DNA of 49,268 bases, taken from positions 1 to 49,268 of the forward strand of contig JAHLWZ010000416.1 of NCBI GenBank assembly GCA_020536535.1. Reading direction: 5' to 3'. The notes below the pieces were generated by a model. The model was not told the origin of the DNA and made no database searches. It worked only from the letters and a program-made list of their open reading frames with translations. Source of the DNA: Pelomyxa schiedti (Eukaryota; Protista; Evosea). Both the position numbers and the translations under genes were made by a program. The number at the start of each line of letters is the position of its first letter. Positions within the stretch are counted from its first letter, which is position 1. Below are positions 3,272-47,900 of the stretch, one piece after another.

Positions 3272-6200
3272 CTATTCAAACAAAAACAAACTACATGACA
3301 TCATTTGTGCACAGATGGTGTCGAGTTGGTGCTGTGCCTCTGAGTGTCCTTCAGCAGCAGCAAGTCTGAAGAACTTTGCTGCTGTTCTCAGGTCCACACT
3401 CCCCACTCCATCACCCAGTTTGTAACACCTTCCCAGGCTGTGCAGGGCATCAATCTCCCCACACAGAGCACCCATGTAGAAAAGACCAACAGCTTTCTTG
3501 GTGTCCTTGGCAACACCCTGACCATTGTAGTAACAGAGTCCAAGTGCGTCTGCAGAAGCAGGAAACCCAGTGTCAAGGGCCCTCTGAAAGAGTGCAGCAG
3601 CCTTGTTGAAGTCCTGCACAACGCCTGAACCATGGCAGTAACAGGCAGCCAGGTTGTGGATGGCACCAGGAATCCCAGCCTCGGCACCCCTCTCATTCAG
3701 CACGACCGCCCTCCGCAAGTCCTTGACTACCCCCTGGCCCATGTAGTAGCAGAATCCAAGTTTGGGTGCTGAATTGATGTTGCCAGCATCCAGGGCTTGC
3801 TGGTGGAGAACAGCGGCCTTGTGGAAGTCTTGTCCAACACCAGTGCCCCAGTAGTAACACTCGGCCATTTCGTACAGGGCCTCAGGGTGCCCATCAGCAG
3901 CAGCAGTCTGATACAACCATGCTGCTCTGGTGATGTCTTTGTCAACACCTTGTCCTCTGGAGTAGCAGAGTCCAAGATTGAAGGAAGACCTGGTGTTTCC
4001 AGCGTCAAGGGCCTTCTGGAAGAGAAGGGCAGCCTCATGGAAGTCCTGGCAAACACCTGTTCCAGAGTAGTAACACTCACCCAGGTTGTGAATCGCACTG
4101 GGATTGCCTCCTGCCATGGTGGCCATCTGATACAACTCTGCTGCCCTGGTTGTATCTTTGTCAACACCCAGTCCATGGAGGAAGCAGTGTCCAAGCCCAC
4201 ACGCTGCTGTTGTCTCGCCTGCATCAAGAGCCTGCTGGTAAAGAATGGAAGCCCTGCAGAAGTCCTGCTTTACACCGATGCCTACGTAGTAACAGTCAGC
4301 CAGTCTGTTCATAGCACCAGTGTGCCCATCGGTGGCAGCCCTCTGAAACAACTCTGCTGCTCTGGTTGCGTCCTTGTCAATGCCTTGCCCATACCAGTAG
4401 CACCATCCAAGGGCGAACGCTGCCTGAGAAATGCCAGCATCAAGGGCCTGCTGGTAGAGCCCTGTGGCCTTGTGGAAGTCTAGTTCACGGTAGTAGCAGT
4501 CAGCCAGGTTGCAGATGGCAGCGGTGTTTCCAGAGTTGGCAGCAATCTGATACAACTCTGCTGCTCTGGTTGTGTCCTTGTCAACACCCAGTCCATTGAG
4601 GAAGCAGTTTCCAAGCCCACATGCTGCATCAGTATCGCCGGCATCGAGGGCTTTCTTGTACAGCATTGCAGCCTTGCAGAACTCTTGCTTGACGCCTGTC
4701 CCTTCGTAGTAACAGTCACCCAGGTTTTTCATTGCACCAGTGTGCCCATCGTTGGCAGCCCTCTGGTACAATTCTGCTGCTCTGGTTGCATCCTTGCCAA
4801 CACCCTTCCCATACAAGTAACACCATCCAAGGGAGAACGCTGCCTGGGTAATACCGGCATCCAGGGCCTGCTGGAAGAGTTCTGCGGCTTTGTGGTAGTC
4901 CTGATGAACACCTGTGCCGGAGTAGTAGCAGCCAGCCAGCGTGAAGATGCCAAAGTTGTCCCCAGAATTGACAGCCAGCTGACACAACTCTACTGCCCTG
5001 GTTGTGTCCTTGTCAACACCCTTCCCATTGAAGTAACACCACCCAAGGAAGTACGCTGCCTGGGTATTTCCAGCATCAAGGGCCTTTTGGGAGAGTTCTG
5101 CAGCCTTGTGGAAGTCTTGCGCAACACCTGCGCCACGGCAGTAGCAGTCAGCCAGCATGCAGATACCGTTGGTGTTCCCAGAGTTGGCAGCAATCTGATA
5201 CAACTCTGCTGCCCGTGTTGTGTCCTTGCCAACACCCAGTCCATCGAAGAAGCACTTTCCAAGCCCACACGCTGCTGTTGTATCACCGGCATCAAAGGCT
5301 TGCTGGAAGAGACTGGAGGCCTTGCCGAAGTCCTGCTTGACACCTGTGCCGAAGTAGTAACAGTCAGCCAGTCTGTTCATTGCACCAGTGTGCCCATCGT
5401 TGGCAGCCCTCTGAAACAACTCCGCTGCTCTGGTTGCGTCCTTGTCAACACCCTGCCCATGGAAGTAACACCATCCAAGGGAGAACGCTGCCTGGGTATT
5501 GCCGGCATCGAGGGCCTGTTGGTAGAGCCCTGCGGCCTTGTGGAAGTCTTGCTCGACACCTTTGCCTTCGTAGTAGAAGGAAGCCAGGTTGCAGATGGAA
5601 GTGAGGTTCCCATAATTGGCACCCATCTGATACAACTCGGCTGCCCTGGTTGTGTCCTTGTCAACACCATGGCCATTCTCATAGCAGCTGCCAAGGTGGA
5701 CGAGAACTTCGCAGTTGCCACAGTCAACTGCTTTCTGAAACAGTGAGGCTGCTTTCTTGTGGTCTTTTTCAAGACCACCCTCGCCGCTGAAATAACACAA
5801 GCCAAGGTTGGCCATTGCCAGGTTGTTTCCAGCATCAGATGCCCTCTCCCAAAGTGCAACTGCTTTGGCAGTGTCCTTGTCTCCAAGGGAAGACATTGCA
5901 CGTGGGTCACCACTGTCAGAGGCCATCTGATAAAAGGAGCCAGCCTTCAGGGCATCCTTGCTGACACAGTTACCTTCTTCGTAGCAAACGTCCTTATCAA
6001 AACGTTCTCCAAGGTAACACATTGCACGTGGGTCACCACTGTCAACGGCCATCTGATAAAACGAGCCAGCCTTCAGGGCGTCCTTGCTGACACAGCAACC
6101 TTCTTCGTAGAACAAAGCCAACACACACATTGCAGTTGTGTCACCCTGACTTGCAGCACTCTCCCACAGCGATATTGCCTTGTTTGCGTCTTTGAGCTCA

Positions 6201-7355
6201 CCTCCAGTTCCATCCCAGCACAGCTCACCCAGCAGAGTCATGCAGGCACACTTCAACAGGGCTGGTGGTTGTGGCTGTGGTTGTGATCCTTCAGGGGTGC
6301 CTTCAAAACGAGGAAAACCCTTTGAAAGCTCAGTCAGGATCAAGTTTTGCCCCCGGCAGTCCTGCATGCAAAATGTCATCCAGAGTGCTGCAAAGTATGC
6401 ACACGACCAGGAGGAGTGGTGGGTGGGGAAGGGAGACTCTCTTTGAGGGTTCGTACCTTGGTGGCACCACAACCTCAACAAGCTGGTGGCATCCACTGTG
6501 GTGCAATTCACATTTGCTGATGCTGTTGAAACCAACTCATTCCACTCTTCAATGGCATTCTGCCTCATTCCTTTTCTGTTCTGTTCCATAACCTTTTGGC
6601 AGGACGTTTGTAATTGTACATTCACAGATGAGACTGCAAATGAAAAATAAGCCAACAACGTGGGAGGAATGTGATTGCAAAGCGTCTCACAATTTGGTGT
6701 GATTCTGATCAGACCCCAAACAAACAACAATCCTGGGAGGTAATGCTGCTGGTTGTTTGGCTCACAACAACCTGATGTTGTGTGTTTTGGTCAGGTGTTT
6801 GGGCAACACGGGAGTTGAGAACCCACCGAAATCAGGATCAGATTTGAAGTCCAAGTAAGCTTGTGAGACAAGTCCAAGTGCAGAGTTGATGTTGCCGAGC
6901 TCCCACTGCATAAGTGCTTCCATCATCATTTTGTTCCGAGTGTTCTTCCCTCCTCCATCTTTGTTTGTTTTGAGTGTTGCGTTTGCGTTTGCGTTTGCGT
7001 TTGCGTTTGCGTTTGCGTTTGCGTTTGCGTTTGCGTTTGCGTTTGCGTTTGCGTTTGGGTGCTTTGTTGGCTCACCTGAACACGCAGGAGAAGCAGCAGT
7101 CTCTGTCCCCGGCGTTGCCACATCCACATTCACACCCTGCGATTCTTGAACTTGTTGCGATTTAGACGATGTTGTTGCAGTTGTTGTTGTGGGCGTGACG
7201 GTGTTGTTGTTGTTGTTGTTGTGGCTCGGTTGTACTTCCCCCCCACACTCGCAGTTGCACTGCGGGGGACTACGCGTTGTGACGTCGCCACTGTTGGAGG
7301 TGCCTTGTTTGTGCGACGCCGTTGGCTCGTAGGTTCTCTGTGTGTTGTTGTCCAT
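3272..7355 (-). CDS. Long Sel1-like repeat (SLR) protein, >20 repeats, with an apparent frameshift near 6780
   Basis: ORF 3272-6730 carries 36-aa Sel1 repeats (A...LG.CY..G.GV.KD..RAAELYQ.AA..G). The N-terminal ORF 6762-7355 is out of frame by a 2-nt loss in a (TG)n run relative to the paralog at 1-747. Confidence 0.85.
6978..7056. repeat. (GCGTTT)n hexamer microsatellite encoding poly-(NA)
   Basis: Direct tandem repeat; a shorter, interrupted version is at ~425-470 in the paralog. Confidence 0.95.
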
Positions 7356-30191: not shown

Positions 30192-32570
30192 TCAGAGCCC
30201 ATCATCACTGCTGTCATCATCACTTGAAAGCTCTTCATCATCACTTTCTCCACTACACATGGAACATATTCGGCGAAGTACTTTCTGAGCAAGGGGGTCG
30301 TTTTCAGCAGCAACCAGTCTGATGAACTTTACTGCTGTTCTTACATCCACAGTACCCACTCCTGTGCCATCTAGGAAGCAGGCGCCAAGTATGTACCTTG
30401 AATTGTGGTCACCACAAGAAGCTGCCTGGTAGAACAGCCCAAGCGCTTTCTTGGTGTCCTTGACAACACCATTACCCCAGAAGAAGCAGTCACCCAGATA
30501 ATTCATTGCCTTGGCGTGCCCATCATCGGCGGCCCTCTGAAACAACGCTGCTGCTTTTGCCTCATCCCAGTCAGCACCTATGCCACTGTGGTAGCAGAAC
30601 CCAATGTCAAAGGCCGAACCTGTGTGCCCAGAATCAAGTGCCAGCTGGTAGAGTTCAGCAGCCTGGCGGGGGTCTCTCTCAACACCTGTTCCGTTCCAGT
30701 AACACTCAGCCAGGTTGTGAATAGCATCACTGAGCCCCGCTTCAGCACCTCTCTGATACAATTCCGCTGCTCTGGCAGTATCCTTGTCAACCCCTTGGCC
30801 ATGGAGATAACAGCTCCCTAGGTCGTTGGCTGAACTGGTGCAGCCGGCATCAAGGGCTTGCTGGAAGAGAGCGGCTGCTTTCTGGAGGTCTTGCTTTGCA
30901 CCGATGCCTTTGTAGTAACACTCAGCCAACTTGTGGATTGACCAGGGACTTCCTGCATGCGTGACAACATGTGTGTAAAACGAGAGGAGCTCATCAGGTG
31001 TTGGAGGTTCGATGATATCCATCAGGAATCTGTGAGCATCCACAAGGGGAGTCCTCTTTGAGGGTTCGAACTGGAGCAACCCGCGAACGAGGTCACAGAA
31101 CTTCTTTGGGAATGCTGGTGGCTGAATCGGGAACGACTCTTCACTCTCGAGTTCAAAGTGTATCAGTCCATCACTCTCGTTGCGGAAGTTGTCAGGGTAT
31201 CCAGGGAGAAGTGGTGGGTGCTGTTGGCCAACAGCACCCATTGCAAATTCAAACAGAATGCATCCAAGTTCAAATGATCCTTGCTGTGTTTTTTTTGTTT
31301 GATCAGAGATTGGAAGAAGGAAGGACATTCTGCACACACCATTTCACAGTTCACAAAGCCGCCATGTTGTGAAGAAATTGCATTGAGAATCTCAGGTGCA
31401 ACGAGGCTTGTGTTCTTCAAAGGGGGAGCAAACACAAACTCTGAAACAAGTTTTGTGAATCGTGGTGTCTTGTTTCCCTCATCATCAAATTTCATTGTGT
31501 GACCAACAAGGTCTGTCAGGATCACTTGTTCGTTGTTCTTTTTTATTGGTTGTTGTTTTTTGTTTAGGGTGAGCATCAGTAGTTAAATTTAGAAAATACA
31601 CACAGAAGAGACAGCGATGGTGTCCAATGTCAGATTGAAGTGAATGACTTTGTTGTTGAACAGGTGAACAAGGGCGGCACTGATGTCCCTTGAATACTTG
31701 TGCACAATGCTCCACGGTGTAGTGGTTGCTGTTTCTGTTGTTGTTGTGTATGCGAGTGGCGCCACAGTTTTCAACAGGAAATTTCGCAGTGTGTCAGGGT
31801 GGTGCTCAAGAACAATCCAAGTCAACAAGCGGGATTTCGTCCCACCATTGAGCACGTGGGGGTCACACATCATCACCATCTCCTTTGCGGAAGCAGGGAG
31901 GGGATCGTAAAACTCCAGTGGGATGGTGTCCTGGAATCGGCAGAAGTACCGTGCAATGTTTGGATGCGGTTCAACCTTGATGCCAATTTGCGTGTAATTA
32001 GCACCACCATTTTCCTGGAAATTGAAGAGAGCCTTGAGGATGTATGATTGGTTGCTGAATAAACCAGGGTGTCCCTTCCCAACGCACTTCACTTCAAAGT
32101 CAATCCCTGTTAAATGATGAAATTCTCTCAGAAGGAAATAAAATGAAACCCAAAACCTGCAACAGAAGAAGAACAGTTCAGCACCTTCACGAAACTGAAA
32201 TTCCTTCCCACAATTACACTACCACCTCCGCCTCCACCATCGGCACCACTTGTTGTTGTTTCCAAATTTTCTGCCAGCACCTGTTGTGTACTTGTTGTTG
32301 TTGCCTTTCTCCTCCTTTTCACCTCTGGTTGTTGCGCTTCTTGTTGTTGTTGTTGTTGTTGCTGTTGTGTTGCGACTCGGTGGCGTCATCGCCAGCTGCG
32401 TCGTCGTCGAGTCTGACGCGAGCCGCCTCCTCCAACCGCTTGAAGAACGCGGCCCGGTCCATCTCCGAGGCACAGGGAGAGGAACACCTTGGTTTGTAGC
32501 CGTGAGTATTATGGGACATTGTGTCGCGGGGATCGTCGTTTCTGCGCACACCACGACCACCGTCCTTCAT
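30192..32570 (-). CDS. Pseudokinase + Sel1-repeat protein, multi-exon
   Basis: Kinase-fold motifs YILKALFN, HPNIARY, IVLEH, IHFNLTLDTI, ILTDLVG, APE, SFELGCILFE, RGLLQFEPSKR, followed by ~6 Sel1 repeats. The 5' end is uncertain (frame change near 32320). Confidence 0.75.
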
Positions 32571-33000
32571 CGCTGAGCGACCACCGGTCCTTTTTTTTTT
32601 TTTTTTAATAGGTTCACTGGTGACTTACAATCATCTAAAGGATGATGCCTGAATCCATCATCCCCAAGGGTGCAGTGCTGGTGGTGACTCTGCGGAGGTG
32701 TGCAGCAGTGTTGTTGACAATGCTTAGACCGTGGATACTTAACTCTATCACCACTTATGTTGTTCATGTAAAAAGCACACTTGACACCTGTGCCACGGTC
32801 ATAAGCACTGATGCGGCTTATGACCCGACACATGGCGGGAGGAAAGTGAAAGTGAAACCAGAACGATGAGAATAAAATACAGGAAGTAACTGTCATCTTT
32901 GTATGAATACTGCATTTTGCAGGTTTCATTCTCAGAGATGCTGCCAATTAATTATAATTATATTATAATTATCAGATTATTATCTCTGAGAATTATATAA

Positions 33001-34850: not shown

Positions 34851-35238
34851 CCGAAACGGAAGGGGGTGGTGGTTTGTTGGGACTGAGGCTTGTTGTGACG
34901 GCAGACATGGGCTGGCTTGGTGGAACCGATCCACCTGCTTTCTTCTTCTTGGTCAGTGTTTCTTCTTGTTCCTTTCTTCTCCTTGATCAGTGTTGACATC
35001 AGCACACTGTTAGAGTATTCCCGGAAACGGTAACTGATGTGCTGAATAAAAAAAAACACCAGAAACGAAAAGTGACAACAACATGAAGAACGCCCAGGTC
35101 GGCCAAGCCAAAGTTTTTGGCTAAAATGACTCAACACACACATTACATCGTAAATTGACCTGCCAGTCTGGTACTCAGTAGACTTTCCCGAATTTATAAT
35201 TAATCGACTTCCCAGCACTTTTTGGCGATTTTTTGGTA

Positions 35239-36070
35239 CAACTCGATTTTTCATCTGTGGCGGCTGCCAACTGGCAGAACCCGCAACAACACAGCCAACG
35301 CCCAACAAACCACAACTGGCAATAAAAAGTGGGTGGCAGCAATACAAACATGTGGATGAAAAAAAGAAAATTTTTTTTTGTGGTGTGGTTGGATGCCCAC
35401 GCCCACGCCCACGCCCACACTCAGCAATCCCATTCTCATGGTGGATCCGTTCTCCATCACCCAACCACCTACTTCCCTGGTGAAGCAGACGCAGGTTAAA
35501 AAAAAATGGTAGCGAGACCAAACGCAACAAAACACAGAACCACAACAGCAAAAAAACGAAGATGACCACAGCAATCGCTCGGAGGTGCCGACCAGCCGTC
35601 CGACGGACTTAGGTTTTTTTAGTTTTTTTCACGGGACTTCACAGCCCACGAAGGCAATTTGATTTCCATACGTTTCTTTTGATCAAAAAAAACCCTTCGT
35701 TGTTCAAAGCATTTTCTTTTTCTTTAATTAACTCAACAAACCGCAAAGCCGCTCGTCGGTACGTAAACCACGGTCCGCTTTTCTCGTTTTCGCCCACTGT
35801 AAATAAAAAGAAAACCATTTTTTGTAATTTTTCTCTTTTTTTCCCCCGATTGCCAGCTGGTTCGTTTCAGCGTTGTTGGGCAGCTGGTGGTTGTTGCTGC
35901 TTGTTGTGGTTGGTGTTGCCATTGACGGTTGTCATACTGTTGTTGTTGTTGTTTTTGTTGTTTGTTCTGTTGGCGTTGGCCATTGCCGTGCTGTTGTCTG
36001 TTGTTGTCAGTTAGTTGTCAGTTGGCGCAACTCGGAAAACACCAAGTTGTGGGTGGCAAAAATCGAGTTG
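35239..36070. mobile_element. Putative TA-flanked MITE with 13-bp TIRs
   Basis: TA|CAACTCGATTTTT ... AAAAATCGAGTTG|TA (TA at 35237-38 and 36071-72), with weak subterminal similarity (GCCAACTG.CA). Confidence 0.55.
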
Positions 36071-36072
36071 TA

Positions 36073-37931
36073 CACCGGGGGGCGAGTCAAATGAGAAAAA
36101 CAGAATTTTTTAGTGAGCAAGGCAGCGTGAAGCGGCCCGATTTTGCGGGGATTTGTTGATGTTTTGTGCCGCGGGGCGGTTGGCGCGGCGCCGCGGCGGC
36201 AGCGCGGCGTGTGTGTTCGTTGAATCGGGTCTCGCCGCGGCTGTGCGGCACTGACATAAATGGGTTTTGGCGATTGTTCAGTGGTTTGTGTCTTTTCATT
36301 ATCACAAAAGAAATCGACGAGGGGAGGCCATGCCGCCAGTGTGAGGAGGAGCAAGCGGTACTCTCCCATTTGCTTTTTGTTGTCTTCTTCGCCACAACTG
36401 TTCTGTTTTTATTTATCGGAGTGGTGTTTTTGATTTTATTATTAAAATACAAATTAAATTTGATTTATTTTAAATAATTATAATGTATTAACCATTATTA
36501 TTTATTTAATTTAATGGTTATATATGCGTATTAATTAATAATATATACGCCTCCAGTTCTTTTTTCCATTCGACCTGTATTAGAAGTCTCCGCATTACAC
36601 CAGTATTTACGCCGCTTAAAACCTGTATTAGAAGTCTCCGCTTTCCGCCAGTATGTGGCTTCTTCTCACGGGAATTAATAATAATAATAATTTAGGTGCC
36701 GGACGTGGTGTCTTGTAATCCCAGCTGGCTAGGTAAGTTCCTTCTGCATTTTTTTATACTGGCACGGTGGTATGTAGCTTTTTTTTTACAGCTGCGCCAG
36801 CTGCCCAGATGGCAACCGCCAACGTACATCCCTCCCCCCTCGTCATCCCACTCAAAGTACTAGGTACCAGACTGGGCACCAGGCCGAATTCCTCACACTC
36901 ACTCTCACCATCCTCACCTCACACCTCTATGTACAAGCCTGAAGTCGAAAATCGACTTCAGGCAAAAAAAAAAAGTTTTATGCCCTTAAGTCCTTGGCTA
37001 AAAAATCGTGCCACCCTTTTTTAAATCCACATTTTGAGAAGTGGGCGTTGTGGGTACACATGAGAGTGAAAGAGTAAGAAGGGAAATTTGGGCCTGGTTG
37101 TGCACCCGTCACAGTAAAGTGTGGTAGTTGGAAAGCGGAAAAGCGGGAGAGTGGGTAAGGGAAGTTGGGGTTGGTCAGTCCGGTACCTACAACTGTTTAG
37201 CAATGACAAAAAAGGAGAAGGATGTACGTCAGTGGTTGTCATGTCAGCAGCGGCAGGAAGGTTGACCACCTAAGTGTAAAAAAAAAAAAAAAAAAAAAGC
37301 ATACCAGTGTCCCAGCGCTGAAAGAACAGATGGAATTTACCTTGCCCGCTGGAATGATAGTTATCTACTATGGGAAAAAGAAAACAAAGAAACAAGAAGC
37401 CACATACCAGTGGAAGGCACGGAAATACATAAAAGGGGTGAGGCAATGCTGTAGGCCTAATACAAGTCGTAAAGGTGTAAAAAATTAATTTTAATTAAAT
37501 TAATAATAAACAATTAAAAAAAATAAATTAAATTAAATTAATTGAAACAAACACGTCCAGAAATAAAACAATTAATATTAGATGGCACGACGTGATGGAA
37601 TAGACAACACAAGGCGGGTACCGCTTGTTCCTCTTCACCCCGGGGCGGCATGGTCTCCCCTCGTAGCAGTGATTTTTTTGATGATAGTGGAGATAAACAA
37701 AGAGGAAAGTCACTGCACAGTCTCCACAACCCCACACATGCCATTTATGTCAGTGCCGCGCAGCCGCGGCGAGACCCGATTCAACGAACACACACGCCGC
37801 GCTGCCGCCGCGGCGCCGCGGCAACCGCCCCGCGGCACAAAACATCAACAAATCCCAGCAAAATCGGGCCGCTTCACGCTGCCTTGCTCACTAAAAAATT
37901 CTGTTTTTCTCATTTGACTCGCCCCCCGGTG
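36073..37931. mobile_element. Non-autonomous TA-flanked foldback/Tc1-mariner-like element with 191-bp TIRs
   Basis: 36073-36263 versus the reverse complement of 37741-37931 shows 3 mismatches by eye. Termini are TA|CACCGGGGGG ... CCCCCCGGTG|TA. The inner arms remain homologous in inverted orientation. Confidence 0.85.
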
Positions 37932-37989
37932 TATAAATGTGCCGGTACGGTACCTGGCGCCGGCATTGTCATCACCCGTCGACTATTCC

Positions 37990-39440
37990 CTACGTACATG
38001 GTCTCATACCACAACAACCAGCATCTAAGAACACGAGAGGATGAACGCGGGGGGCTGCACCGCAACAACAGAGTTCGTCTCTGCACCAGTACGACCACAA
38101 CGACAGCGTCATCAGGCAGGTGCGGGGCGGTGTTGTGCGGGTGCTGTGCGGTGCGACGCCGTTGTGGTGCTCTCCACGCCCAATCATCATGGCTTGGACG
38201 TGGTGGCTGTGGAGACAGAGACCGAGGAAAAGGGGAAAGGAGGAAATAGGCCGAGATAGTCCAGGACTTGGAGAACGCGCAGGTCGAGGCAATGGTGGCG
38301 TGGCTCATGTCTAGGGTGCCGAGCTTCATGCAGCCGTTGTGGAGGCAACACAGGGCTTGGAATCGAATACTGCCAGGACACACTTTGCTAAGCAATGGTT
38401 GTGTATACTCAACTGTGATCTCTGGAAAGAGGCGGAGCTGAGAGGTATGTTATTTTACCCATTGTAATAATATTTATGGATAACACAACCCGATCGCAGC
38501 ACAATCTACCCATCACGCATTCACACAATTTCCAATCACACAATCAAGCAATCACTTCACGCAATCACAGCCAATCTAATACCACAAACCAGAGAAACCT
38601 GTGTTCATCTTGTATGATTTGATGGGGACATCATGGTGGCTTGCCCTGAAGCTAGTATAATTGAAATAGATGATGTCCTCACTGTGGTTTGGGATTTGCT
38701 CTCTAATGCAAGCACACATAAGCCATTATTGAGCACCATAGGTATGCACTACCAGATTTCTGAAGTGCTGATATTCCGCTATCAGAGAAACTTTTGCATG
38801 AACAGCGGTCTAGCCTTTCCATGTACAAGGAAGGCCTAGAGCACATCATTGAGAGAAATACAAAGACTAGTAATGGGTTGCCCCCGATGGCTTGGAGACG
38901 AAGGCTCCAGATGTCAGAATGTGTCCTCAGTTCCAAGGTTGTTTCCTGCACACCTCCATGTGGAGCAGCCTGGGCTGCCACCAACACACTCGACTACAGC
39001 AAGGAGTATTATGCGGCTTATAAAATTGGTATGGTCCTTTTGACCCTCACTACCTCTCACCCACTTCATACTGCAGATGTCAATCTGGTGTATGACCTCG
39101 AGAGGCCTTTGAATGTCACTCAGGTAGAGGTCAAGAATCGCAGCGGCGAAGGTGTGAATGACAGAGTCATGGTTCAACCTGTTGGCCAGCAACTCCCTCG
39201 ATGCTGCTAGCAACTGGGTTCCAGTGATTGTGATTGAGTGTGGAGAGGCCGATCCTTCAGGAGGACTGGCTGGTTAGTGAGAGTTACAAAGAATTCATTC
39301 TCAAGAACAACAACTCCAGGTTGACAGTGACGGTCAAATTCATTGACCTGCACCCACTCACCTGACTCAAACAACACCACCAAACCCATTCAAACCGAAA
39401 AGAATCATTTGGCTTTCGGTCTGTTGATTCCAAACCAACA
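37990..39440 (+). pseudogene. Degenerate coding-like region upstream of the RING/B-box gene, possibly a decayed kinase-like N-terminus
   Basis: Fragmented ORFs with stops. LDYSKEYYAAYKIGMVLLTL resembles the kinase subdomain IX region. Confidence 0.3.
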
Positions 39441-41933: not shown

Positions 41934-44900
41934 TCACAGGTTGGATATGCCTGTGAATCCTCCACCCCCAAGTGGTATCCCCGACCCCATCTGCATGTTG
42001 TCCGACATAGGAATCCCCGATGACATTTGCTGTGGTAGAACGCCGGGCGGGGGCATGCCAATTCCCATGCCCATCGCCATTCCGCCTGTATTCACACTCA
42101 TTCCCATGCCCATTCCCATTCCCATTCCCATTCCGCCTGTATTCACACCCATGCCCATTCCCATCCCCATGTTCATTTGCGAGGGGTCAACCGGTAAAGT
42201 TACAGGTACCGCGGGTGGTGGCATAATTGCCTGAAGGCCTGGTTATGAATTAGGGAGGATGCAAATGAAGATGTGAGGGTAGTTTTACCGTAGGGGCCAA
42301 CGCCGAACTCTTGTCTGATGGGTTGATCAAACGCGGAGTTGCTTTTCTCCTTTTCCTCTTTGGCTTTTTGGATTGCCTCGAGTTTGGAGAGTCGTTTTTC
42401 GAGTGATTTGATCTAAAACCAACGGTTAGTGTTTGGGTGAAAAGGAATGGGTAAAACCTTGTGTGTGTATGTGCGGTATGATTGGATGAGGAATGGATAT
42501 GTGTATTCCATCAAATTATTTCTCCAGCCGTATTCAAGGGCCAGATCCGGTCGGATAAGCTNNNNNNNNNNNNNNNNNNNNNNNNNNNNNNNNNNNNNNN
42601 NNNNNNNNNNNNNNNNNNNNNNNNNNNNNNNNNNNNNNNNNNNNNNNNNNNNNNNNNNNNNAAAGGAATGGGTAAAACCTTGTGTGTGTATGTGCGGTAT
42701 GATTGGATGAGGAATGGATATGTGTATTCCATCAAATTATTTCTCCAGCCGTATTCAAGGGCCAGATCCGGTCGGATAAGCTCGTAGCAGGTGTAGAGAC
42801 AAGCAACGTAGCCGGCATTGTTGTTGTTGCGCACAAAGTAGCTGACCAAGTCTTCGGCAATCTCCTGCGAATCTGATTCGGCTGCTATTTGTACAGCATC
42901 TTTATGCATATTGTCCTTCTTGCAAAGGGCAAGAGCCTTTTCGTAGTTCTTGGTAATCTATTGCGAGGTCAGAAGGAGGCACACAACCTACATCCAACGT
43001 TACCGTGAAGAGGTTGGAAGCAATTCTCCTGAACTCGAGGAGAGGATGCGACTCGAGGGCACACGCAAGAGCATTGTGGTCAAACTTGTCAAAAGCGGCA
43101 ATAGATTTTCGGAGAGCTTCGTACTCCCCCTCCTCAATGTAGAGTTCATTGAGCGCCTCATTGACAGCAGGGATGTTTTGCTGAAACACGTTAGAAATAA
43201 AAATTTAGAGAAGCGTTACCTCTTGTACTCTCAAAAGGTATTCCTTGATCAAAGCGAGGCGAGATTTGCGTCTGACCCTATCCACAACTGTCGTGTGGTC
43301 GACTCTCGCTATGACAGCCATTAAAAGGTCAACAATTCGTTTTGGTTGCTCCGCAAGGTAAAAGTCGACCGATTTGTATACAAGGTCCAGCTTAGCACGT
43401 TGGATAGCCTCTCGGAACAATGTGTGATCGAAGGCATCAGCACTGTGCTCCATCATTGTTTCAACAGCCTTGTCTGGCTCATTTGCCATACACAAGAAAG
43501 TGACCTCTGCCAAAATTGTTAGTAAAGATAAGAAAAGCGCGAGAATGAACCTGGCCATTGCTGGTTGCGTGAGCAAACCTGCATTACTTTATTGACTTGC
43601 ATTCTGTCATTGTATTCCTTGAGGTGGTCCATGAGTTTCTCCTCTTTGTACTTGCTGTACAAGATAGCAAGCTCAGTGAACATTCCGACGTGGGCACGTT
43701 CAAGAGCCAAACCGCTCTCAAGCAAGCTGATTACTTCCTCGAAGTAACCTCTCTTCTCGTAATTGATAATCAAGTCACTCAGCTCGTCGCCATGGATGAT
43801 TATGTGCACACCGCAGAGCTGGGCTAGCTTGAATTCCTTGGCATCAACGCAGGCAATGTTGACTTCCTTCCAGGTCTTTGTGCTGTTGGCTTTGCGTGCA
43901 GCGTCAACAGCCAGGTTGTACTGCTTAAGATGGATGAGGGTCGAAGCCAACTTGACATAGTTGTTAATGTTGCTGTAGAGCAAGCGAGCAGCCTCGAACA
44001 ATTTTGCGTCGAAGCACCTGTCACCGACCAGTTGGATTTGTGCTGTATTAGGCGAGTTGATGAACTCCTCAAGGTCACCCAGCTTGCTGGTTTTGGCAAA
44101 AGCAAAGAGCAATTCACTCTCAATCCTTGTGTCCTTGACGTTTTTGCGGCACATGCGCAAGTAGAGAACCAAATCTTCATAGCAGTTCTGCACAGCTGCA
44201 GCTTTGATAACCTTAGGATTCGTTACAAATAGATGAAAGATAGAAAGGCAGCATACAGCTTCAAATGACTCGTGGTCGTTCGCCTTGATAAAGGAGTCAA
44301 TGGCATCTGGTACCAATAACGCATTCAGCTGTGCAGTGGCAAGCTTACTCCAGACAGCAGGCTCGTTAACAAGGGAGGCATACTCCTTTCCTCGGGGAAT
44401 GCTCTTGATATTCATCAGAAGGACTTCAACAGCCTGCACGTGGTGCTTGAACTTCTTCAGAATGAAGAATGCTTCTTCATTGAGCGCGTTCTCAATGCAA
44501 ATTCTTGAAATTTCTTGAGCATCATAGTTGTTCAGACGATCGGCGTAATTCATAACACGCGATGTGTCAGCTCCAATAGCGGTCAAAAGGAGGAGATTCT
44601 GCAAGCTCTTGTGATCGCTGAATTCGGTGCCTTCCAACACAATCTTATCCAGTAGCTCAAGCAACTCAGCGGGGAGATTGGCATTCATGAACGCCCGCAC
44701 GGTCGTGCTGACCTCATCAGCAACCTTTGTTTCAGGGAGGGCGGTATGGACCACTTGGTCAATCAATTTCTTCCTGTGAACGTTGCTCTCGTCCAAGACA
44801 CTCTTCCATAGACCTAGATCTTGTCTCTCAACCAAGTACCTGGCTTGGCTCTTGAAAAGTGAGTGCTTGTTTGTGACCTCAATGATTTGAGGATCACACT

Positions 44901-47900
44901 TCCCCCTCTTGTAGGCAATGAACGCAAGGTTCGGGTCGTGATCCTCACAGTACAAACCGACCTCCAAGCTGTCATAGTAGGGATTCTTGGCCAGAAATTC
45001 CTCAGGGTTCTTGCCGATGTACACGTAAATCTTGGCAAGGGCGTTGTGTAGAGCAGTCTCCTGGTTTCCTTCCTGCTCGCGCTCCTCAAGCCAGGGGAGA
45101 AGAAGTTTCAGCCGATTGCGGTCATTGCACACCTTCACAAGGGGCTCAATGGGGCAGCGTCCATGGACGTTCTGTGGACAATTAGAAGAGGAGAAATCGA
45201 AAGATAAAACTACCATCACGAGGGTTCTGACGTACTCCTCATTGCAACCACTGTCAAGAAGAGCTCCAACAACGATGGGAGTGTTGGGAGGGTTGATGGT
45301 GGTTACGTAGACCTCAATGAATTTGTTGTAATTGTTGATGTAGAGGTATTTGGTCATATCGTCCACGAAGTCGAACTTGTCACAGACAATAATGAGGGGA
45401 AGTTGATCTGTGAGTCTCAGTTCCTAACAGAGAGTAAAAATATAGCAAAGAATAGAACTAATACAACCTTCAATAGTTCTTTCACGCGGTCCCCAGGATA
45501 GTGCTCACTGTCGCGACACACCTTTTCCAGTTCAGCAAACTGCCCTGTTCGAGCAGCTGCCTCAATGTACTTGTAGTGAACTTCAGCATCAGTGCTTGTG
45601 GAGATAATCTGGGCAAGATAGAAGAAAATTCCTAATTTTCATCAGAGACCAGAAAAAATGAGAAGTACAACCATCATACGCCTTGAACGTCTCGAAGAGT
45701 TTCACAAGGTTTGCAGGCTTCAACAACTCAGAGTATGTGGTAGCAACTTTTACAACGAGCTGGGTAGAGGTTAAAAAAAACCTCGGGCAAAAAAGGAGGT
45801 CTTACCCCGAGGTGCATCTTTAGATTGATACGCAAGAGGTCCTGCAGAATTTCCAATGTATCTTCGGCGGAAAGAGTTCCAAAATACTTAATCAAGAACT
45901 CCGCTGGTATAGCCTCTGTGTGGATAATAACTCGCTTTATGTCGGCAATCTCGGTGTAGTGCTGTAGTGCCCGGTGGTACAACCTTGCGCGCTCACACAG
46001 CTGGCCAATGTGGAATCGATCGTAATAAGTGTAAAGTTCTTGAGCCATGATTGCATCAGCAACTCCAGGTGTATTGAGGAGGTTAATTTCCAGGAGCTTG
46101 GTTTGGAGTGGGCCATCTTCAGGCTTGTTGGTTTTCATCACATCAAGCAAAAGGGAAGTAAGCTCCTGAACAAGCTTATACCGCATGAAGGCCTCAATAA
46201 CCTAAAAGAGAGGTAAAAAAAAAACATGTATTGTTGGATGGTAAAAAGACCTGATTTATATCAACTGTGGCTCCACCGCTTTGAAGTAACAACAAGGCGA
46301 AAGATCGAGCACGCTCGGGGTTAATTGGAATAATGGCCATAAGGAGAGCCATGTAATCAGCCTTGAAACCAACTTTGTTGCAGTAGGCAACAATTTTGTC
46401 GAATTGTCCCTGTTCAGCCAAAATTTGCACGACCTTAGCATGTGCATTTCCTCGCACGTATATGCTTGTGATAAGCCTTAAAATGTCGGGTGTGATATTC
46501 CCTGCTTTGCGAATTTCATCTCCCATAGCCTCACTGCATTCAATCTACCAAAAGGTTAGTGGGAGAAAAGAGGAACACGGTAAGTCACCTTCTCGTCGTT
46601 CACCCATGTCTCCAACAATTGCAATCTTCCTTGTGAAATGACAAGGCGAGTTAGCTCCAGACCCTCCACGGAATTGAGCTTGGTGTTTTCGAGTAATGTG
46701 GCCAAGTAAACCAACAGCGGACCAGGTTGCCCAGGTGCAGCAGGAATTTGCTGAAGCTGCTGAAGAGTTGTAGAATTCCTAATGCTTGTCTGCGGCAAAA
46801 CCAGTCAAATAAGGAATGGGATAAAACTTTCATACCCCCGGAGACTTGGCAGCCAATACAGCGGCCTCTTTGATTAAACCTTGTCCGAACAAGCGAGAAA
46901 ACTCGGCTTTGAAGAGTTCGTCCGCTCCAGAAAGATTGTTCTTAGCGGCAATCTTTCTGGCAAGACCAACGTCATTGAGTGTAGTTGTTATGTAGGGAAC
47001 AATGGTTGATTCGTCGACGCTAACTGAGAGCACTTGACCCTTCCTGTTCACTGCAATCATTCCATCAGTTGATTTCTGGTAGGTGGTGAGGAAAATGGTA
47101 TCAGAGCTAATCCTTTTGCGGTCCACAAGTGTGCCAGTTCCAAGGTAGTACAAATGAAGGAAACCAAACCTGAAAGAGTTAATGAGAGGAAAAAAAAGTG
47201 AATGTGTACTTGGTGATCACAAAGACCATGTCGAACTTTTCTGAAACCTGCACACCAACAGGGAAATCTCCCTGAATGTCGGGTGGGAAAGAGATTTCAA
47301 CGGCAATTTTTCCAAACGGTTTGTCCTCTTCTCCCCTTGACACCTCGGCAATGAAGAGTTTGCCACCTTGAAGATTTTTCTGTGCGAACACAAAGAGAGT
47401 ACTTGGTCGTGTTGCTCCCTCAACGCTGAACGAATGTTAGAAGAATACGGCAGGGTAATCTTACGTGTATTGTGCGAAGGCGGCAGCATGAGCCTCAATG
47501 TTCTGACTAACACCCTTTTGCACGCTGTGTAGTTGTGCACACCCAACGACTTGACCTTCCTGGACACTGTTTAAGTAAAAACTCAAACGGGAAAAAGTAC
47601 CTTGGGGGCGATGCCAATCAACGCAAGCCATGTTTCAGATGCATCTGCGCGGTAGTTGATGATCTGGCACTCATTGAGTTGAGGTAGTCTGTCGAACATT
47701 TTGGTTGGAGCATCTTTTCCTGAATGTGTTTTTTAGATGATTTTGGATTGTCGAAGGTAAAGGAAAATACCATCCATGTGCCAGTGATACACTGATGTAC
47801 CCGTTACCAGGGCAATACAGTTGTTCGTTATCCACTTCCAGAAGACCAATGGTTGGGGCATCTGATATTCCTTTATCTTTTGTCGTTGGTCCATGTCAAA

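Follow-up and report, generated by a model that had tools for sequence, protein, structure and literature searches.

At positions 36073-37931 of the window (the whole 49,268-nt stretch analysed, contig JAHLWZ010000416.1) lies a near-palindromic element of 1,859 bp, which starts with CACCGGGGGG... and ends with ...CCCCCCGGTG; these ends were set by comparison with other copies. The surroundings are ordinary gene-bearing eukaryotic DNA, as seen from a long Sel1-repeat ORF (3272-6730, minus strand; 1,152 aa, 19 Sel1 stretches) and a clathrin heavy-chain exon (43519-45366, minus strand). The host, Pelomyxa schiedti, is an anaerobic amoeba, an archamoeba, and its 52.4-Mb genome was assembled into 5,337 scaffolds from seven micromanipulated cells (PMC8887013). 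The genome paper makes no mention of repeats or transposable elements (PMC8887013), and we found no description of Pelomyxa transposons in the literature searched. The features of the locus are as follows.

35179-36072, plus strand: host repeat X, a TA-ended repeat of a different TIR family, inside which the window copy is nested; the last 58 nt of X are missing
36071-36072, no strand: left TA, one copy of the putative target-site duplication; nearly all family ends are preceded by TA with unrelated flanks beyond, and five uninterrupted copies of X cross this point
36073-36263, plus strand: left TIR, 191 nt, starting CACCGGGGGGCGAGTCAAATG; the inner half is high in GC, with CCGCGG motifs that recur
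36264-36963, plus strand: left inner arm, with diverged inverted homology to 37052-37740
36939-36963, plus strand: perfect local hairpin CCTGAAGTCGA-AAA-TCGACTTCAGG, then an A-run, read from the sequence itself
36964-37051, no strand: central non-symmetric segment of ~88 nt, the foldback loop; the arm alignment stops at ~36963/37052
37052-37740, minus strand: right inner arm, the diverged mirror of 36264-36963 in the arm alignment
37741-37931, minus strand: right TIR, 191 nt, 98.4% identical to the left TIR (inverted-repeat search and copy comparison)
37932-37933, no strand: right TA; the sequence beyond is single-copy and does not continue repeat X

The raw inverted repeat has arms of 196 nt (36068-36263 and 37741-37936, 98% complementary), within which the TIR proper measures 191 nt with three mismatches (98.4% identity) and is bounded by TA on both sides (36071-36072 and 37932-37933), as the initial annotation had it. 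That annotation also described a more diverged inverted homology deeper inside, and every block that it quoted is present in the arm alignment: the inner arms (738 nt on the left, 739 nt on the right) are 72.8% identical in inverted orientation over 626 aligned columns, and against locally shuffled controls the alignment reaches z=10 for the global and z=20 for the local score, with no signal for the same arms in direct or reversed-only orientation. The homology was thought to stop ~150 bp from the centre, which underestimates its reach; it extends to ~36963/37052, that is to ~45 nt from the centre (37002). From arm to arm, conserved blocks of 10-20 nt alternate with diverged, indel-prone, AT-rich low-complexity DNA. 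In the left inner arm there are stretches of low-complexity, AT-rich DNA and, at 36573-36654, a degenerate tandem repeat with a 26-nt unit. In the parts of the element searched, TRF reports only a degenerate 26-nt array (x3.3), a (TAA)5, a short 9-nt array and a poly-A run. The local hairpin at 36939-36963, with an 11-bp stem, lies just left of the element centre.

The initial annotation had noted that the element holds no transposase ORF, and the interior ORFs tested indeed gave no Pfam match above cut-off; an Rfam search of 35500-37472 gave no match either. Of the earlier proposal of a foldback element or a cargo-carrying non-autonomous transposon, the foldback part stands; no cargo was found, because the interior consists of the diverged arms and the ~88-nt centre only.

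A dispersed family and its TA insertion sites

The initial annotation had proposed a BLASTN search for further copies. In the assembly searched (52,367,397 bases, 5,337 contigs) the family occupies at least ~56 loci, 34 with TIR matches of 91-100% identity (40 of 140 first-look candidates were scored) and 22 others with interior matches, so that the element is clearly not single-copy. Nearly every family end reads TA-CACCGG with unrelated flanks beyond the TA, and in more than 35 ends the TA target hardly varies, the exceptions being a few degraded ends. Deletion derivatives shorter than the window copy occur as well (887 bp on C2075, ~260 bp on C618). Leaving gaps aside, divergence from the window copy is ~3-6% for the TIRs and ~2-7% for the centre; it is somewhat higher in the AT-rich arms, which carry many indels, and the mutual divergence among copies is 3-9%. 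Given these low copy-to-copy differences, the copies are moderately young and the divergence of the inner arms is older than their spread. Many copies sit at contig ends; the family thus evidently breaks the assembly, which is relevant to improving and annotating it.

Empty TA sites had also been suggested as a check, and one was found. The filled site on C2075 reads ACTTACT-TA-(887-bp family copy)-TA-ACTGTGG, and the empty site on C449 (3729/3730) reads ACTTACT-TA-ACTGTGG, with a single TA. The right flanks are 98% identical over 300 nt, the left flanks align once a 156-nt indel and a difference in (CA)n length are allowed for, and deleting the element together with one TA from C2075 gives a contiguous match to C449. 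This is the one clean empty site (n=1), with the extra 156-nt indel nearby. The two loci (L035, C2075:1-1483; L077, C449:3394-7255) match at 98% identity apart from the 887-bp element, the 156-nt indel and the (CA)n length. They may be an allelic filled/empty pair, which is possible because the assembly pools seven cells, or a recent (paralogous) duplication; as a filled/empty pair among sequences from seven cells, they are evidence that copies are, or were recently, mobile. Together, the family ends, the empty site and the uninterrupted copies of repeat X described below indicate that insertion is at TA with duplication of it, and that TA is a true target-site duplication of the family.

Repeat X, in which the window copy is nested and which also occurs at L085-L089, has at least 20 matches in the genome; it ends with ...GGGAAAGTC-TA, and its other end is found inverted at 35179-35251 (92% over 73 nt). 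Five uninterrupted copies of X read ...GAGTTG-TA-CCAAAAAATCG... through the left junction of the window copy, and the sequence that follows the junction TA in these copies is CCAAAA.... The window element sits 58 nt from the right end of X; those 58 nt are absent beyond the element, where the flank is single-copy and not a continuation of X. An element-free allele of the window locus was looked for and not found, the right flank being single-copy and the left flank repeat. As the right flank does not continue the left one, the two TAs of the window copy cannot be shown to stem from one simple insertion, and the copy has undergone an adjacent deletion or an exchange of flanks.

Two further observations concern the flanks of other copies. 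The copy on C1512 (L034, C1512:2119-4333) is the only well-preserved one that lacks TA at its left end (...GTTC-CACCGG), and its left flank matches window positions 32381-32587 over 207 nt at 98% identity. The left flanks of different copies, C1459 (L033) with C315 (L064) and C54 (L031) with C530 (L071), are 74-75% alike over 130-190 nt; this similarity stops 54-78 nt short of the insertion point and suggests repeated insertion into another dispersed repeat.

Concerted evolution of the terminal arms

A family consensus built from 14 copies has the following arm-to-arm identity, by position along the arm.

1-177: perfect
178-179: two mismatches
180-194: identical
176-275 overall: ~84%
beyond 275: ~70%

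The two-tier symmetry is thus, judging from the consensus, ancestral to the family and not peculiar to the window copy. In a comparison of the TIR arms of 12 copies, the mean difference is 6.4% within a copy, as against 8.6% between copies (permutation P=0.0002), and in the best-preserved copies the same-copy difference is 1.6-4.7%. Variants are mirrored within individual copies: the terminal GGGGTGCAAG is present on both ends of the C54 copy and GGAGTGTAAG on both ends of the C1512 copy, a block of seven changes is mirrored in both arms of the C315 copy, and three insertions in both arms of the C803 copy. Among copy-private variants, 15 are found on both arms and 105 on one arm only, whereas roughly one mirrored case would be expected from independent mutation. 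The same-copy signal is significant in the TIR (P=0.0004) and missing in the inner arms (P=0.07, 0.84). One copy, on C1459, has arms of two different subtypes and is chimeric. Because the TIR arms of a copy share derived variants and its inner arms do not, these comparisons show that the terminal ~190 nt evolve in concert and that the inner arms apparently no longer exchange. The initial annotation had read the element as an old inverted duplication whose termini are kept homogeneous; the variants common to both arms of a copy bear out the homogeneity of the termini, and the reading as a whole holds up. The family is a clean natural case of concerted evolution that stays within the outer arms of a foldback element, and it lends itself to studies on the maintenance of long TIRs.

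We infer both the homogenisation mechanism and the transposase that mobilises the family (see below). The element goes back to an old inverted duplication, which is why it is near-palindromic over its whole length. In the ancestry of the present copies, changes in one terminal repeat were transferred again and again to the other, only within the outer ~177-194 nt, presumably by intra-element gene conversion or by repair of a snap-back stem, limited where the similarity of the arms collapses; the deeper arms have drifted to 70-84% identity and have stopped exchanging. Homology-dependent conversion between arms, or snap-back stem repair, is in our opinion the likeliest mechanism.

A different account of the outer arms is that the ends are occasionally re-created by template switching during gap repair (SDSA), or that selection for binding of the transposase acts over the whole 190 nt. 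Template switching is a proposed origin of long-TIR and hairpin MITEs (PMC3814204), and the stepwise identity (100%, then 84%, then 70%) could record successive events with different switch points. However, mirrored variants arose independently in several sublineages and always inside the same ~190-nt boundary, and such a fixed boundary is easier to reconcile with conversion limited by homology than with rare events whose end points vary; selection by itself cannot put an identical new variant, indels included, on both arms. We therefore regard this account as unlikely, bearing in mind that template switching is a partial rival and that it and conversion are not mutually exclusive.

More speculatively, homogenisation could be coupled to transposition itself, with a single-stranded snap-back intermediate whose stem is mismatch-repaired at each round, or the arms could give rise to hairpin transcripts that feed a small-RNA pathway acting on Tc1-like elements. 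We hold either version to be improbable, and to our knowledge no such small-RNA pathway or Tc1-like transposon has been described in this amoeba. If the transposition-coupled version were true, the sharp boundary at 177-194 nt would mark the functional limit of the snap-back intermediate.

Superfamily affinity and a candidate transposase source

Duplication of a TA target is typical of Tc1/mariner elements and a hallmark of the superfamily. In profile searches the genome holds at least 22 DDE_3 (Tc1/IS630-type) fragments and four DDE_1 fragments; the mariner (PF01359) and CACTA (PF02992) profiles had no match in this genome, and equally none in control genomes. None of the 14 transposase loci examined (10 with DDE_3, four with a pogo-type DDE_1) has the long family TIR, and an autonomous copy carrying the full 191 nt was not found among them. 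A search for an autonomous partner between identical TIRs, which had been suggested along with the BLASTN search, led only to a relative with TIRs of 16 nt.

This relative, at C449:4894-8050 (L081:666-3822; L054 from 639), measures 3,157 bp, is bounded by TA at either end and has perfect TIRs (CACCGGTGTGCAAATG). The left terminus was verified with a second copy, on C4240, in which homology begins right after an unrelated, TA-ended flank. The C449 element carries a weak HTH-like ORF together with a DDE_3 ORF, which scores 46 bits (E=5.8e-12; cut-off 28.6 bits). The D/D/E-type motifs of the transposase (DLDEMGC, MMDNHPAH and SPDFAWIE) lie in different frames, and the gene thus either has introns or is decayed. 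The element is low-copy, with fragments on C4240, C4070, C2554 and C4940. The terminal 45 nt of the family, chiefly in the variant CACCGGAGTGCAAGTCAAATGAGAAAAACAG, resemble both ends of the C449 element (P=0.0005-0.005 with the first 6 nt fixed); the similarity stops after ~35-45 nt, and deeper sequence is not alignable. The C449 element is the only transposase-bearing one found with TA-CACCGG ends. As evidence for the superfamily, this terminal likeness to a DDE_3 element is suggestive, and it is on the TA duplication and on this likeness together that we base membership in Tc1/mariner. The Tc1/mariner affinity named in the initial annotation thereby gains support from a DDE_3 element of the same genome with TA flanks and similar termini.

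On these grounds we consider it very probable that the window element is a non-autonomous foldback-type transposon of the Tc1/mariner superfamily with homogenised termini, resident in Pelomyxa schiedti. Having no gene of its own, it would depend on a Tc1/IS630-type DDE transposase encoded elsewhere, which would bind the termini (CACCGG...), excise the element by cut-and-paste and insert it at TA, duplicating the TA. The source of this transposase is probably a relative of the 3.16-kb element at C449:4894-8050, which makes the latter a candidate Tc1-like transposase source.

CACTA-Mirage-Chapaev elements have CAC... termini, a 2-4-bp duplication without sequence specificity and a CMC-type transposase. 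The family could accordingly be a TIR transposon of another superfamily, for example of CACTA/Mirage type, and its likeness to the C449 element a coincidence: its termini do begin with CAC, that likeness spans ~35-45 nt only, and no autonomous partner with the full TIR was found at the 14 transposase loci examined. Yet the family targets TA specifically, with hardly any variation in more than 35 ends, and the sole transposase-bearing element with TA-CACCGG ends carries DDE_3, which leaves another superfamily with a small probability, below that of the preceding alternatives.

Smaller still is the chance that the arms are functional, as convergent transcription units with micro-exons or as a long hairpin RNA processed to small RNAs. 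The alternation of conserved arm-to-arm blocks with diverged stretches could be read in this way; about 10% of sampled words of 35400-38600 are present in two single-cell RNA-Seq runs, and a transcript would fold into a long hairpin. These words, however, may stem from elsewhere, either the flanking DNA or further family copies. The conserved blocks measure 10-20 nt and the diverged stretches are AT-rich, low-complexity and indel-prone; furthermore, the ORFs tested have no Pfam match, 35500-37472 has no Rfam match, and within single copies the inner arms do not co-vary.

An inverted duplication is the usual form of an amplification chimera. That the palindrome is an MDA chimera or an assembly error in a genome derived from micromanipulated single cells (PMC8887013), with many copies at contig ends, can nonetheless be given a negligible probability, because dozens of loci show this architecture, with flanks that are unrelated and copies that diverge from each other by 3-9%, nearly all ends are precisely TA-bounded, an empty site exists, and a chimera would not give inner arms that are just 73% alike, a point already raised in the initial annotation.

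Several minor observations were made along the way. The C4070 copy of the C449 element diverges 23 nt past the transposase stop; no feature is assigned to the 3' 1.8 kb of the C449 element itself. The 8-mer TACACCGG was seen at three transposase loci and rejected, as none of them has further similarity: L055 and L056 are two copies of one repeat, and in L059 (C968) it is a chance match inside protease-like coding sequence. Positions ~2900-3124 of L059, beside a DDE_3 fragment, translate to an apparent segment of a papain-type cysteine protease (...LLVGYGTDAGTPYWKVKNSWG...).

Comparison with known elements

The kind of element described here is already known, and current understanding is not overturned. 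TA-flanked Tc1/mariner MITEs include families whose TIRs are far longer than those of their autonomous relatives, some being 'essentially foldback structures' (PMC3814204); in Caenorhabditis elegans these are PALTA1/2/4_CE, CeleTc2, CeleTc5 and Tc6/Tc7 (PMC3814204). With these palindromic elements the Pelomyxa family shares the TA duplication, the absence of coding sequence, the multi-copy state, the foldback structure and TIRs longer than those of the transposase-bearing relative (PMC3814204). There are a number of differences, taking the C. elegans elements as published: (i), the host is an archamoeba and there is no sequence relationship; (ii), at 1.86 kb the window element is larger than most of them; (iii), its arms are two-tiered, perfect over ~190 nt and 70-84% identical further in, rather than uniformly paired.

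Stowaway-like MITEs are likewise non-autonomous, with a TA duplication, termini like those of a Tc1/mariner-type element of the same genome and an unrelated interior. They are typically shorter than 0.8 kb, however, against 1.86 kb here, and number thousands of copies against tens. The window element is thus non-coding like a MITE, but its length and its tens of loci depart from the small size (<~0.8 kb) and high copy number of that class.

The FB/Galileo elements of Drosophila also have very long inverted arms, which account for most of a non-autonomous copy, with dynamic TIRs, and Galileo includes chimeric copies with arms of different subtypes (PMC3573991), to which the C1459 copy may be compared. 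Galileo nevertheless belongs to the P superfamily and has 7-bp duplications and tandem sub-repeats in its arms (PMC3573991), whereas the present family has TA and no sizeable sub-repeats; it is therefore not a foldback element in the strict sense (tandem sub-repeated arms, 7-9-bp duplication), and the overall foldback geometry is all that the two have in common. The Galileo paper makes no explicit statement on homogenisation of TIRs within a copy (PMC3573991). Such homogenisation is not unprecedented: in ISWpi1 of Wolbachia, gene conversion takes place between the TIRs of a single insertion sequence (PMC3004938), so that intra-element recombination makes the terminal repeats identical, as we propose here. 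ISWpi1 is a bacterial IS with TIRs of 23 bp and a single mismatch (PMC3004938), in contrast to the ~190 nt and the many mirrored variants of this eukaryotic family. Within the literature searched, this is the first characterised DNA-transposon family for this archamoeba.

Lastly, IR-DR Tc1-like elements (Sleeping Beauty, Minos, Paris, S) are autonomous, with a TA duplication, inverted repeats of 200-250 bp and a transposase-binding direct repeat at both ends of each inverted repeat. The TA duplication and inverted repeats of ~200 bp are common to both; autonomy is not. When the outer 35 nt of the family TIR are compared in direct orientation with positions 36-230, no such direct repeat emerges (score 8.0, shuffle mean 7.1, P=0.3); the sole internal match to the terminal motif is an AAATGGG heptamer near position 185.
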